A DNA stretch of 64,000 nt. Source: Azolla caroliniana. Taxonomy: Eukaryota > Plantae > Polypodiophyta. Made by a program: the position numbers and the translations under genes. Location: assembly GCA_043228905.1 (NCBI GenBank), contig JBHGNT010000006.1, positions 7,254,001 through 7,318,000 of the forward strand, given 5' to 3'. The notes beneath the pieces are model-generated. The model saw nothing but the letters and a program-made list of their open reading frames with translations. It had not been told where the DNA came from and ran no database searches. Every line of letters begins with the position of its first letter. Position 1 is the first letter of the stretch. Of the stretch, positions 13,272 to 19,879 are shown piece after piece.

Positions 13272-14166
13272 GAGCATCTAACAACAATATCTAATTGAGA
13301 ATTGCTCTTACAAACAACATTTAATAATAATTCTCAAAACAATATCTAAGAATAATTATGATAACAGGATCTCTAAATAGGCCAACATAACTTGGTAGTC
13401 AAAGCATCAAAATTGTGAATTTGAAAATACAAGTTCAAATGTTGGCACTAGCCAATTGAGGAGAAACCAAAAACTCTAAACACTTGTAAATCGGCAAATA
13501 ACGACATTTGAGCCCATGTTTTCAAAGCTTATTGTACTCTATAATCAAATGTTGGTACTCATGAATCAAGGCATATGTTAAGGTGCAACACTTGTGAACG
13601 CGTTTGTCCACAGGTTTCGATAACCAATCGATCCATTTGTTTATAACAACACATCTTTTCATAAGCTAGGCTCTCACATGAAGGTTCACGATCTCTTAAA
13701 CTCGTGGCTGATATTAAGCTTCATTGATTAGGTCGAGGATTATTACTTTTGATATTTCGACTACCAGAATTAGGGGTGGTGAGCAATTAGGGTGCGTGAG
13801 AACGAGCAGGTGTGTGGGGATATGAAGATTCATGCATGCATGGTTGGCAGGTGGCGAAATTGCATGTTATGGATGAGAAGGCGGCCTCATGCAATGGTGT
13901 CCCCGGACAACACCGAATTCCGGATGGGAAGATGTTCGTGGGCATTGTGTGTGTGTCCGCGGGCAACAACGAACTTTGGGACGAGATGAGGATCATTGGC
14001 ATTGTATTGTATGTGTGTGTCTCCCCACACAACATTTCATTGTCTTGAGAGAGGCTAGGCTAGTCTATTATTATTCACAATAGGAAGAAACTCATTATAC
14101 ATACATTATGTATTACAATTTACATACATACATTATTACATACATATGTACATACAGAGAGAGAGA

Positions 14167-14220
<54 letters not shown>

Positions 14221-14224
14221 TGGC

Positions 14225-14357
14225 ATGGCGAAACAGAGCAAGTCCAGGATGGGACTCTTGTGGAAGGACTACTTCAGAGATCCTTCTCTTTGGTACGACA
14301 ATCGAAACACAAAGGTAATTGGGATTACTCTTTGTATTCAGTTTTCTCTATGTGCTT

Positions 14358-14446
<89 letters not shown>

Positions 14447-17400
14447 CATTGTTCTTCATATATAGGATAGCTTCAGGTACCCTGATTTTAGACAAAGAAT
14501 CACATATGAATCTCTATGGATCCATGGATGGCTTAATCCCTTCTGGGTCCATGAAGAGCTCAGAAGAAGAGCAGCACACAGTGAATATAGTGACCATGTG
14601 ACAATGAGTGATGAAAATTTTGTGGCTTTACTCAAATCTTGTGCTGACAAGAAAGATGCATGCGAAGGTATTAGGCTGCATGGTGATATCTGCAAAAAAA
14701 GGCTACTTCCAAAAATACCTTATCTTGGTAGTAGTTTAATTAGTATGTATTCCAAATGTGGTCTTCTTGCTAAAGCTCGAGAAGTACTTGAAGAGCTTCC
14801 AATTCGTGATATTTTCTCTTGGAATGCACTTATTGCTGGATATGCCTCACATGGTCAAGGAAATGAAGCATTAAATTGCTTTGACCAGATGCTAAAAGAA
14901 GGTCTCTCTCCAGATCAAGGTACCTTTGTTTGTGTCTTGAAAGCATGCGGAATCATAGGGTCTATAGAGAAGGGGAAAGAAATCCATGATGAGATTGCGA
15001 GTAGTGGTTTGATAGAGAAGGATATTGTACTCGGTACTGCATTGGTGGATATGTATGCGAAATGTGGTCTTCTTGAAAAAGCAAGAGAAGTTTTCGATGA
15101 GTTCCCTGTGAGGAATATCATCTCGTGGAATGCTCTAATTACAGGGTATGCTCAGCAAGGGCAATACCACGAAGTATTGAATTCTGTTGATCAGATGCAA
15201 AGCGAGGGTCTCTCTCCAGATGGAGTTACTTTCATCTGCCTCTTGAATGCATGTGGAAGCACTGGAGCTATAGACAAGGGCGAACAAATTCATGAAGAGA
15301 TTGTTGCTAGGGGATTGTTGGAGCAAGATGCAGTACTTGCGAATGCTTTAGTGGATATGTATGCAAAGTGTGCTGCACTTTCAAAGGCATGGAAAATTAT
15401 AGAAGAACTTAATATTCAAGATGTAGTTTCTTGGAATGCATTGATTGCTGGATATGCCCATCAAGGGCAAGGCCAAAATGCATTGAATTGTTTTGAGCAT
15501 ATGCAAAGACAAGGACTCTCTCCAGATGCGGTAACTTTCACTTCCATTTTGAAGGCATGTAGCATTGTGGGGGCTGTAGGCAAGGGTAAACAGATCCATA
15601 AAGAGATTGTAAGCAGAGGGCTGATGGAGAAGGATATTGTCCTTGGAAATGTATTAGTTGACATGTATGCCAAATGTGACTTGCTGGCAGAAGCTCAACA
15701 AGTGCTTGATGAGCTTCCCATCCGAAATGTGATCTCTTGGTCTGCCCTTATTGCAGGTTATGTCCAAGAAGGGAAAGGTCATCAAGCATTGAATTGTTTC
15801 GAACGGATGCTGAATGAGGGCCTCTCACCTAATGTAATCACCTTCATTTGTGTCTTGAAAGCTTGTGGCAGCATAGGAGCTATATGCAAGGGTGAACAAA
15901 TTCATGAAAAGATCTTAAATACAGGGTTGTTAAAGAAAGATATTGCACTTGGCAATGCTTTGGTAGATATGTATGCCAAATGTGGCATGCTTGTGAAAGC
16001 ACAAGAAGTCCTGGGTGATCTTCCGTCACGAGACGTGATCTCTTGGAATGCACTAATTACAGGGTATGCACAACATGGACAAGATCATGAAGCACTGAAC
16101 TGCTTTGAAAAGATGCAAGGTGAGGGCCTTTCTCCAGATGCTGTCACTTTTACGTGCATCTTAAAGACCTGTGGAAGCGTGCAAGCAATCGAGAAGGGCA
16201 AAAAGGTTCATGAAGAGATTGAGAATAGTGGTTTGCTAGAAAAGGACACTATGCTTGGGAGTGCTTTGGTGGATATGTATGCTAGATGTGGTTTGCTTCC
16301 AAAAGCTCGGGAGGTTTTGGAACAACTTCCAGTTAGAGATGTAACATCTTGGTGTGCTTTGATTTCAGGTTACACCCAACAGGACCGAGGCCATGAGGCA
16401 CTAGAATGCTTTGAAAGGATGGAGAATGAGGGCATCTCTCCCAATTCAGTGACTCTTGTGTGCATTTTGAGGGCATGTGGCATTATGGGAGATATCGATA
16501 AGGGCAAACAAATCCATGAAAGAATTGTCAAATTGGGCTTGTTGAAGGGAGATATTGTGCTTGGCACTACGGTGGTAGACATGTATGCAAAATGTGGTAT
16601 GCTTGCAAGAGCACAAGAGGTGCTCGAACAGCTTCCCGATCGACATATAGTAACATGGTCTGTACTAATCACAGGATATGCTGAACAGGGGCAAGGCCAT
16701 GAAGCACTGAAATGCTTTGAACAGATGCAAAATGAGGGTCACTCTCCAGATCTGGTGACCTTCATTTGCATCTTGAAGGCTTGTGCTAGCACTGGAGCTG
16801 TAGACAAAGCTGAGAAAATTCATGAACAAGTTGTAAGAAGTGGGTTGATAGAGAAGGATATCGTGCTCGGTACAACTTTGGTAGATACATATGCGAAGTT
16901 TGGCCTCCTCTCAAAAGCGCGTCAAGTTCTTGAAGAGCTTCCTAGTCGAAACATTGTCTCTTGGAATGCACTAATTGCAGGCTATGCCAGACATGGACAG
17001 GGTAGTGAAGCACTAAACACACTCCAGTGGATGAAAAGTGAGGGCTTCTTGCCAAATCACATCACATACTTATGTATCCTAACTGCATGTGGCCACTCTG
17101 GGCTATTGGACGAGGCACGGATTTTATTTGCAGATATGAATAGTAGCTGTGATGCCATTGTGCCAAATATAGAACACCGAACTTGCATGATAATGGTCTT
17201 TGGGTATGCTGGGCGTTTTGATGAGGCGATTTCAGTTATTGAGGCAATGCCATCGTTGGATGATGGTGCTGTTTGGCTTGCATTGCTAGCTGCTTGTAGG
17301 AAATGGGCGAATGTGGAGATTGGAAGATTAGCTTTCGATCAGGCTGTACAACTTGATGAGAGTTGTGGAGCAAGTTACATTCTTATGACTGATATTTTTG

Positions 17401-17525
17401 CAGCATCTGGCATGCAAGAGGATGCAGAAAAAGTCGAAGCAATGCGGCTAAAATATGCAATTCAGAACACAAAGCCTTATCAGGATGGCAAAATGTACAT
17501 AGATTTAAATAGCCATTTCACTTGA
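14225..17525 (+). CDS. PLS-class PPR protein (E subclass, no DYW) with N-terminal OSB-type PDF-like motif; 2 exons, 1049 aa
   Basis: Exon 1 is 14225-14314 (MAKQ...YDNRNTK|GT), the intron is 14315-14465 (TATAG|), and exon 2 is 14466-17525, in frame with the 975-aa ORF. About 26 P/L/S motifs in ~102-aa triplets (DVxSWNALIxGY / PDxVTFxCxLKAC / LGxALVDMYAKCG), then E1-E2-like sequence and a stop. Confidence 0.92.
14365..14440. repeat. Compound (GT)n(GA)n microsatellite inside the PPR intron; a similar tract lies upstream at 14156-14220
   Basis: Direct inspection. Confidence 0.95.
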
Positions 17526-19879
17526 ATAATGACCAATGTTCCAACCTCATTAATGAAGAAAGGACGTGCATATGTTGTTGCAATTCACTAATTCCGGTGA
17601 TTGTCATTCTTGTAGCTAATTTGCTTTAGATGATCCCTGTTGTTTCTTTCATCATCCACAATCTTCAAGCACTCATTAGGATGAGGAAGTTTTATCAAAA
17701 CAAACTCCTTAAATTGAACCTAGTTTGCTAGTGCAAATTTCTGGTCACAATAAAACATTAAATATGCTTCTTTGAAAGCTTGTTCGTAATCCTCTCATCC
17801 TAAACAAAAATGTTTTACTTGGAGGAACAAGAGACATTGCCAATTAAGGCAGCACACAAAGTGACTAGGGCAGTACTTTGCTTGAGATTTGTTGCTAGAT
17901 CAATACAAGTACATAAACGTTGGATTTATTCTACCTCTAATCGATAGCTCAACTTATGTCGTTTATTGGTTGGCCCCGACCTTGATATATCCTTACTCGG
18001 ATGCATCACCCAAACATTTGTGTGAGCTATGCAAATTAATTATTTTGGTGGTTTGTGAGAAAGTTTTACTTGTTGATGTCAAATCCAAAACCGCAACTAG
18101 TGATACAATTACATCCTATTACGTTGTAAAGGAAACCATTTTTATGGTCCATCCACATATGGTTGAGATGTTTGATCCATCAAAGAACCATATATCTCTA
18201 GTAGTGAATGGATTTGAAATGTTTGTTGTATTCAATTGTTGGTAGTGTAGTATAAATTCTAAGCTTCTCTTTCTTTTGTAAAAAATATTCTGGCCTACTT
18301 AAGGGCTTTAATGAACCTTGCTCTCTCTATACATGCCGCTTAATTTTTTTAGCTTTTTGGTAGACCAATCCTATATTTTGACTTCTTCTTAAGATTGGAA
18401 TCTATTTTAGGTTGAACTTGGGCATATAGATTTATGAAACTTACTCTTACCATCCCATTAACATTTAAAAAAATTGAAAGAGATTAATAAATATCTTTGG
18501 GTTCTCTTCTTGCACCATCTATAGAACTTGGTTTTGTCCTTTGAATTATGCTTGATCTTTAAAGCCTTTGGTCATGGCCCACACAACAATATAGTTTCTT
18601 ACAAATCACATTTCTTATTATTCCAAACTATTGTGTCAACTTTAACAAGGACTTGATTGATAAAGGTACGATTGCGTGTGCACATGCTGACAAACGCGCA
18701 AATCCCATTCATTTGTCACACATAAGAGATATGGTGTTTATCCGCATTCACTATTCAAATATGTATGTCTAATGTTAAAATTAAACAATATAAATTTACT
18801 GTTGTTGAAAATCAATCAAGCGTCAATGCACATTGATGTTGCATTACTATGGTTAGGCATACTCTAATTCTTTCCAAATCCACAACCATATAAATGTAGA
18901 TCACATATGAAAGTGCTATAGAAAACTTTAGGCTAAATCAACACCACAAGAAAGTACAATTCCATACAAATAACCAAAAGTTGTTGCAAATTTTGGCTAT
19001 TCAATGCATCACGTTATTTTCTTGAATCGAACTCTTGAATACCCAAAGGTACTTTCGCAAATTGGGAAGCACGAAATCTTATACGTTGTCAATATTTATA
19101 TGATATAGTCATAACCTTACGAACTAAATTCTATAACTAATTTTAATAGTTTAATGGTGCGGTAATCGGGAAATTGACCATAGGTCTGACTTGGCTAGCT
19201 GTTCTGAAAGAAATAGGTGCAGAAAATCTAATTTGGTAATGTTTCAATGGAAATCCAACTAGATAGTGGCGAAGCTACGTCATTTTACTCTGATGCGTAT
19301 CCTAACATACATACATACATAATAGTACCATGTACAACATCGGTACTGATACCGATGGTTCTTTTGAATTATATGCCGCCTGTTCTACTCCAACATCCTC
19401 GAGATCTGGAAAGCAGAGTATTATGGATGAGGAAGAACCCTGGCAATAGACATAGGAATTTGGACAAACCCATAAGAACCTAGGACACGTGTGAACATGC
19501 GGTGGTTTGGGAGCCTTAGCTGTTGGGCAATATAAAAAGGGTTAGCTACCACCCCCTTTAATACAATATACTGAGATGTTGTCGAACACTATTGAGGAGG
19601 TGAAGCTCTCTTCTTTAAATGCCTTATTCAACAACCAAGGTATAACATACGGTAATATTTGGTGGTATGCTCTCCCATATATTATACGAGTGTATCAAAT
19701 GCTTCTAAGAACCAAGTTCATATGCTTGGCCAATCTTGTGCGAATCAATTCCATATCAATTTATCTTGTCGTTAAACACTCCTGTTGATGATGTCGTTAA
19801 TCGCATCTATTGATATAGAGCAAGAGGGATCATTTGCCAATCTCATTTTTCATGTGCTTGAAGAATAACTTTTGGGCCA

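Follow-up and report, generated by a model that had tools for sequence, protein, structure and literature searches.

[quoted passage not shown] This nuclear gene of a fern is very likely expressed, and its two coding exons specify a PDF domain, then PPR repeats of the PLS class and finally an E motif; a DYW deaminase is missing. We distinguish this protein from the OSBs themselves. Arabidopsis OSB1-OSB4 and their plant orthologues share with it a PDF domain of 50-60 aa, and they act in organellar DNA recombination. In an OSB, a transit peptide precedes an SSB-like OB-fold, and the PDF motif stands at the C-terminus in one to five copies, whereas the window protein carries its single PDF copy at the N-terminus, has PPR repeats over the next 900 aa or so, and has no SSB/OB domain (Pfam shows only PPR/TPR-type families and the E motif). 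Because it is without the SSB-like domain, the window protein is not an OSB, and only the PDF module is held in common.

The features of the gene, in window positions, are the following:

14205 to 14224, + strand: 5' UTR, minimum extent (record 17 of the run X2 contigs begins at 14205 and is colinear up to the donor; ATG read from the sequence)
14225 to 14314, + strand: coding exon 1, 30 aa, with a leader of ~10 aa and the opening half of the PDF domain, comprising helix 1 and the W.DNR..K strand (translation, OSB-PDF HMM, near-invariant W, P, W, D, R, K)
14315 to 14465, + strand: intron of 151 nt, GT..AG, phase 0 (sequence; skipped in the X2 contig; zero intron-bin depth in runs X1, X14 and X2)
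14466 to 14567, + strand: start of exon 2, with the remaining half of the PDF domain, comprising the PDF signature, LW, P.WV and helix 2 (translation, OSB-PDF HMM, near-invariant P, D, F, L, W, P, W, V)
14568 to 14603, + strand: short linker from the PDF domain to the PPR array (translation; no family match)
14604 to 17306, + strand: PLS-class PPR array, about 26-27 motifs (Pfam PPR_2, PPR, PPR_3, PPR_1; recurring DMYAKCG / SWNALI landmarks)
17307 to 17441, + strand: E motif, E1 and the start of E2 (Pfam PF20431)
17442 to 17525, + strand: truncated E2 tail and stop codon, with no DYW after it (translation; tblastn with three DYW C-termini)

Exon 1 translates to 30 aa ending in DNRNTK, within the W.DNR..K stretch, and is directly followed by GTAAT. 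The frame of exon 2 is open from 14466 for 1019 codons, with its stop at 17523-17525, so that the two exons together form an intact reading frame of 1049 codons. An in-frame TAG at 14463-14465 stands directly before exon 2 and overlaps the AG of the acceptor; because it closes the frame there, the list of open reading frames begins only at a GTG at 14598, and 30 codons of exon 1 and 44 codons of exon 2 are missing from it. A sequence-only reading of this DNA had held that splicing adds 74 aa overlooked by the open reading frames, and this is borne out, with both translations as it gave them. A (GT)n(GA)n microsatellite at about 14349-14448 takes up most of the intron, and a second microsatellite adjoins the start codon. 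Within the transcribed region, 5 nt upstream of the start codon, there is also an ATG in another frame (14220-14222); it belongs to the frame of the open reading frame 14169-14318 and may lower translation of the main frame. Upstream of the start the main frame is closed at about 14180. Only ~10 aa stand ahead of the PDF domain, as had been noted earlier for this gene and as is matched by the Pteridium sequence P0244 and by P0207. With a leader this short, organelle import is not evident from the sequence of the window gene.

That the spliced mRNA is real we consider very likely. Contigs of four public sequencing runs, presumed by guess to be RNA, were placed on 14201-17600. Record 17 of run X2 (204 nt, 0 mismatches) covers 14205-14312 and 14464-14559, with 108 and 96 nt on either side of the joint; since AG stands on both sides, this joint yields the same product as 14314/14466. 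The junction that had been proposed for RNA-seq confirmation is thus crossed without a mismatch, in a run presumed to be RNA. In run X14, which comes from another study than X2, a contig begins at 14464 and continues for 99 further letters, and the depth of the exon 1 bin equals the depth of this contig multiplied by 99/114, from which we infer that the contig carries the 14314/14466 joint. Both exon bins are covered in X2, X14 and X3, and the depth of the intron bin is zero in X1, X14 and X2 and very low in X3. An intron-less DNA copy of the gene could also place such a joint in the reads, but it would have to be a processed retrocopy identical in sequence.

Homologues lend independent support to the splice joint. 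The Adiantum capillus-veneris protein P0010 has the entire PDF motif before its PPR array with no intron (2664 nt uninterrupted, 887 aa), and its spacing from DNR to PDF is 8 residues, as in the spliced window model. In tblastn comparisons with 17 fern relatives, mostly fragments, the alignments break at the intron, ending within 14314-14329 (at 14314 or 14317 in every case except one); those that continue beyond it start again at 14469-14481. These homologues also bear on a different choice of start codon, in which translation would begin at the Met at 14604, and exon 1 with the 44 codons upstream of it would be an untranslated leader. The open reading frame list, beginning at GTG 14598 with an ATG at 14604, agrees with such a start, and the upstream ATG at 14220 could capture ribosomes, its frame ending at 14601 in the spliced RNA when read by hand. 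We regard a start at 14604 as very improbable, since the 74 upstream codons make up a complete and well-conserved PDF domain, split where the HMM expects continuity, and since in homologues that lack the intron or come from transcripts a single frame runs through the PDF domain and the PPR array.

The identity of the N-terminal domain was examined by profile searches in both directions. An HMM was built solely from OSBs, using 15 PDF motifs of 8 proteins that are positive for Pfam SSB and have the OSB architecture, and was searched against all stop-to-stop pieces in the six frames of the window (105,364 residues). It finds two significant places, the next best match having an E value of 0.8. 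The first is exon 1, which matches HMM positions 7-26 (26.0 bits, E 8e-7), and the second is the start of exon 2, which matches positions 28-59 (32.6 bits, E 7e-9). Along the HMM they lie end to end, and the splice therefore restores one uninterrupted domain. Matches of this strength go well beyond what chance would give. Both exons are thus significant under the check with OSB PDF motifs that the sequence-only reading had outlined. Among 111 aligned PDF domains, 14 columns are at least 90% conserved, and the window exons match all 14; two positions of the window domain carry conservative K-to-R changes.

For the reverse search, a profile was made from PPR-borne motifs only (alignment A3, made up of Adiantum P0010, P0121 from a fern transcript, Diphasiastrum P0036, and one row for each of the two window exons) and run against 1.84 billion representative proteins. 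At a threshold of E<=1e-3 it recovers 883 proteins, mostly OSB-like, of which 342 remain at E<=1e-10, with E values down to 1e-57; single-copy OSB-like proteins stand at about 1e-18 to 1e-19. Among the best 150 of these 883, most begin with some 200 motif-free aa and carry 1-5 copies at their C-terminus. In 8 of 10 OSB-like proteins tested, the region immediately upstream of the copies holds a Pfam SSB match that exceeds the Pfam cut-off. One matched cluster is from Ceratopteris, with one of its members named a single-stranded DNA-binding protein by a source, and a match from Sinapis alba (427 aa, three copies) has SSB below the Pfam cut-off. Pfam has no model for the PDF motif, and a search of the PDB by sequence returned nothing. 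Word-indexed protein searches gave no match for the 50-aa N-terminus and a single transcript fragment for P0010:1-300, results which reflect a limit of the index rather than absence. From these reciprocal searches and the near-invariant residues, we take it as practically certain that the N-terminal 55 aa are a true homologue of the PDF domain, in agreement with the earlier assignment of this segment to the OSB PDF motif.

Structural evidence comes from the Adiantum homologue. Residues 10-70 of P0010, modelled by AlphaFold2 with the 111-sequence alignment (pLDDT 94), form a helix, three short strands and a helix, so that the PDF domain is predicted to be an alpha-beta-beta-beta-alpha module of roughly 55 aa. 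In the ESM Atlas this model superposes at TM 0.91 (61 residues, rmsd 1.0 A) on a plant cluster with a Pfam SSB share of 98%. Three PPR clusters, with 127, 57 and 63 members, match it at TM 0.85-0.93. Starting from the model of P0010 in the Atlas itself leads to an identical list of matches. A close homologue of the window domain is thus predicted to share its fold with an SSB-family cluster. Searches of the PDB with the P0010:10-70 model found nothing by Foldseek at E<=0.001 and a best Z of 2.7 by VIA-align, and the viral structures of BFVD gave no significant match. Hypothetical phage proteins in the ESM Atlas resemble the model at TM 0.65-0.76.

The remainder of the protein is a PPR array with an incomplete E domain. 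Pfam identifies PPR_2 (2e-136) and PPR (1e-126), along with PPR_3 and PPR_1, in 17 PPR stretches; the array repeats at intervals of about 102 aa, which corresponds to eight to nine P-L-S triplets in all, and the DMYAKCG and SWNALI landmarks recur along it. At residues 948-992 of the exon 2 translation lies the E motif PF20431, with 33.6 bits (cut-off 27.3), and as the match spans profile positions 2-46 of 63, E2 is incomplete and the protein ends inside it. The DYW domain (PF14432) is absent from the window protein by Pfam, tblastn with three DYW C-termini found no remnant in, near or downstream of the gene, and there are no open reading frames of note downstream of the stop. The sequence-only reading had described an editing-type PLS-E reader of ~26 motifs. 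The motif count and the E motif agree with this description, and "editing-type" stands in the sense of PLS-E; beyond that sense it does not hold, as there is no DYW in the protein or downstream of it and E2 is cut short.

Fusions of this kind are found elsewhere, and the architecture is not unique to the window gene but marks a family extending from mosses to ferns. Among the best 150 of the 883 reverse-profile matches, 19 also match the PPR array of the window protein. Named fusions come from mosses (Sphagnum fallax, S. jensenii, S. compactum and relatives), from lycophytes (Selaginella moellendorffii XP_024517303 and several loci of Diphasiastrum complanatum, some with two PDF copies) and from ferns (Adiantum capillus-veneris, including one protein with two copies, and Pteridium aquilinum transcripts). 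The sequence-only reading had proposed counting such fusions in ferns, lycophytes and hornworts; they are present in the first two groups, and also in mosses. C-termini were analysed for nine fusion proteins, drawn from five genera of moss, lycophyte and fern; the E motif was present in 8 of 9 and DYW in none. Thus, PDF-PPR fusions constitute an old, DYW-less PLS family, which in this sample comprises only mosses, lycophytes and ferns. A tree of 111 PDF domains (58 columns) does not distinguish one ancient fusion from several.

Members of this family differ in what precedes the domain, their leaders ranging from 8 to over 100 aa. Sphagnum P0281 has a presequence-like leader of 43 aa, in Diphasiastrum P0277 the leader is long and there are two PDF copies, and many fern members have leaders of 25-45 aa. 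P0207 and the Pteridium transcript P0244 (open reading frame recorded as 42-401 of its contig) start with MAKK/MARK and a leader of ~8 aa, resembling the window gene.

Could the window gene be a decaying copy within the large PPR expansion of ferns, transcribed but without function, its PDF exon and truncated C-terminus being relics? Several features agree with decay: E2 is cut short and DYW is missing, microsatellites occupy the intron and adjoin the start codon, an out-of-frame ATG lies upstream, and the Adiantum sequences P0001 and P0014 carry degenerate versions of the motif. Against these stand the 1049-codon frame, intact over both exons, the retention of all near-invariant PDF residues, and canonical splice sites used in two runs from different studies (directly in X2, inferred from bin depth in X14). 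Moreover, because it is common to all nine tested fusion proteins of mosses, lycophytes and ferns, the DYW-less state is a trait of the family and not a sign of decay. We therefore consider a functionless copy improbable.

If the window gene encodes a functional PDF-PPR protein, what might its role be? Two bodies of knowledge bear on this question. The first concerns the PPR moiety. A PPR array binds RNA with its N-terminus toward the 5' end of the RNA, and the E domain adjoins the processed site. The architecture is that of the PLS-E class, the E-type editing specificity factors of seed plants (CRR4, for example), which likewise have a P-L-S array and an E motif without DYW. To our knowledge, the known E-class factors are without a PDF domain and begin with a transit peptide. 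The window protein differs from the class in its PDF domain and truncated E2, and in that its DYW-less state is common to its moss, lycophyte and fern relatives. Physcomitrella has been described as being without E/E+-class PPR proteins (PMC3858427). The same source lists PPR proteins with accessory domains in that moss, including PPR-SMR, PPR-RRM (PPR4), PRORP with NYN and OTP51 with LAGLIDADG, and PDF is not among these accessory domains for Physcomitrella (PMC3858427). Such proteins share with the window protein a design in which an array for sequence specificity is accompanied by a second small nucleic-acid domain, but they are P-class and their extra domains have other folds.

The second concerns the PDF moiety. 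In three reviews, the PDF motif and not the OB-fold is reported to be responsible for ssDNA binding in OSB1, and OSB1 and OSB2 are reported to prefer ssDNA over dsDNA or RNA (PMC6963530, PMC4166229, PMC6451138). An organellar ssDNA-binding fold that also binds RNA and has a role in RNA splicing is described for the maize Whirly protein WHY1 (PMC2532728); Whirly has an unrelated fold and no PPR fusion, so that the analogy with the window protein is one of function only. A full-text literature search for the PDF motif together with PPR returned OSB papers only and no paper on a PDF-PPR fusion, and PPR is not mentioned in a 2026 survey of 182 OSB genes. The sequence-only reading knew of no functional description of this architecture, and the literature search found none.

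Our preferred explanation, which we hold to be probable overall, is that this is a PDF-PLS-E protein without DYW in which the PDF domain serves as an extra grip on single strands. In this explanation, the PPR array would read a specific organellar RNA sequence, and the N-terminal PDF domain, facing the 5' side of the bound RNA, would add a sequence-independent hold on single-stranded nucleic acid. One option is that the domain would hold the RNA itself, upstream of where the PPR array sits, and so either increase affinity or prevent the RNA from folding. Another is that it would hold exposed ssDNA of the nucleoid or of a transcription bubble, bringing the factor to nascent transcripts. We give somewhat better than even chances to the PDF domain binding single-stranded nucleic acid in its PPR context, with DNA and RNA about evenly split as its ligand. 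An RNA role for the PDF domain would be new, given the preference of OSB1/2 for ssDNA over RNA, and this counts against that option. As all tested members are without DYW, the protein is less likely to be an editing enzyme complete in itself than an RNA-processing or RNA-stabilising factor, or a specificity factor that relies on a deaminase acting in trans.

The PDF domain might instead make no contact with nucleic acid in its PPR context, and act as a protein-protein or localisation module for oligomerisation, for docking to OSB or nucleoid proteins, or as an unconventional import signal. Such a module would suit the N-terminal position of the domain, which in the window gene, in the Pteridium transcript P0244 and in P0207 is preceded by only ~10 aa. 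It would also suit the many conserved Trp and Phe residues of the domain, which may belong to a core rather than stack, and the tetramer reported for AtOSB2 (PMC6963530). However, other members have ordinary-looking leaders ahead of the domain (e.g. Sphagnum P0281, with 43 aa, and Diphasiastrum P0277), so that the PDF domain itself is not the presequence. In addition, the copies in OSBs and those borne by PPR proteins conserve the same residues, which argues for a shared activity, and published work assigns ssDNA binding to the PDF motif itself. We thus consider a purely protein-binding or targeting module rather unlikely and keep to the extra single-strand grip.

A bolder version of the grip can be put forward only tentatively: either PDF-PLS-E proteins are ancient DYW-less organellar factors, spread from mosses to ferns, that physically couple a specific RNA sequence to the ssDNA of nucleoids, or the PDF domain is a general binder of single-stranded RNA and DNA. 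If the coupling reading is true, the family would be a dedicated device for co-transcriptional RNA processing; if the domain is a general binder, this would change the interpretation of OSB proteins too.

In addition to describing a protein architecture, our findings bear on the annotation of fern genomes, in which ORF-based annotation misses the PDF domain because an intron splits it. RNA processing by PPR proteins and control of DNA recombination by OSBs are usually treated as separate worlds, and here one conserved protein joins modules of both. The PDF-PPR family thereby offers a testable handle on whether the maturation of organellar RNA is tied to its DNA template, on the true ligand of a PDF domain that is without a matching fold in the PDB, and on the role of DYW-less PLS proteins in early land plants.

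Two long microsatellites lie near the start of the PDF-PPR gene:

14155-14222, (GA)n microsatellite, abutting the start codon
14349-14448, (GT)n(GA)n microsatellite, occupying most of the intron

The second of these was left out as a repeat in the mapping of the run reads. An additional ATG, out of frame, is found at 14220-14222, 5 nt 5' of the proposed start codon, and it falls within the transcribed region, as the contig spanning the splice joint in X2 (a public run presumed to be RNA) begins at 14205. Read by hand, the frame of this ATG would cross the splice and stop at a TGA (14599-14601), giving an overlapping upstream ORF of ~77 codons that may lower translation of the main frame. Over positions 22000-64000, further along the window, the G+C content climbs from ~0.35 to 0.50-0.58 and strong skews are present, a composition consistent with retrotransposon-rich DNA.

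Among annotated fern PPR proteins, including from Adiantum, some (P0001, P0007, and P0014) have an N-terminal PDF domain that consists of the second half only or of a degenerate copy, which suggests either that first exons were missed in public gene models or that the domain has decayed in some paralogues.

In the ESM Atlas, neighbours of the modelled PDF domain of the Adiantum capillus-veneris protein (P0010, residues 10-70) include hypothetical proteins of Uroviricota phages, in two clusters (187 aa and 199 aa), which resemble the PDF fold at TM 0.65-0.76. Because comparison of the fold with BFVD gave no significant match, this apparent phage likeness is treated as a lead only.

What is the range of the PDF domain outside OSB and PPR proteins? 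One protein of Coptis chinensis (P0178, 1526 aa), named by a source as kinesin motor domain-containing, has three PDF domains, which may reflect either a further fusion or the merging of gene models. Five others (P0122-P0126) carry 9-13 PDF domains in tandem, without an SSB or PPR part, and include proteins from Kingdonia uniflora (P0122) and the dinoflagellate Effrenium voratum (P0123). Reviews describe the PDF domain as limited to green plants; since one tandem-PDF protein is from a dinoflagellate, the range of the domain, contrary to those reviews, extends beyond that group.
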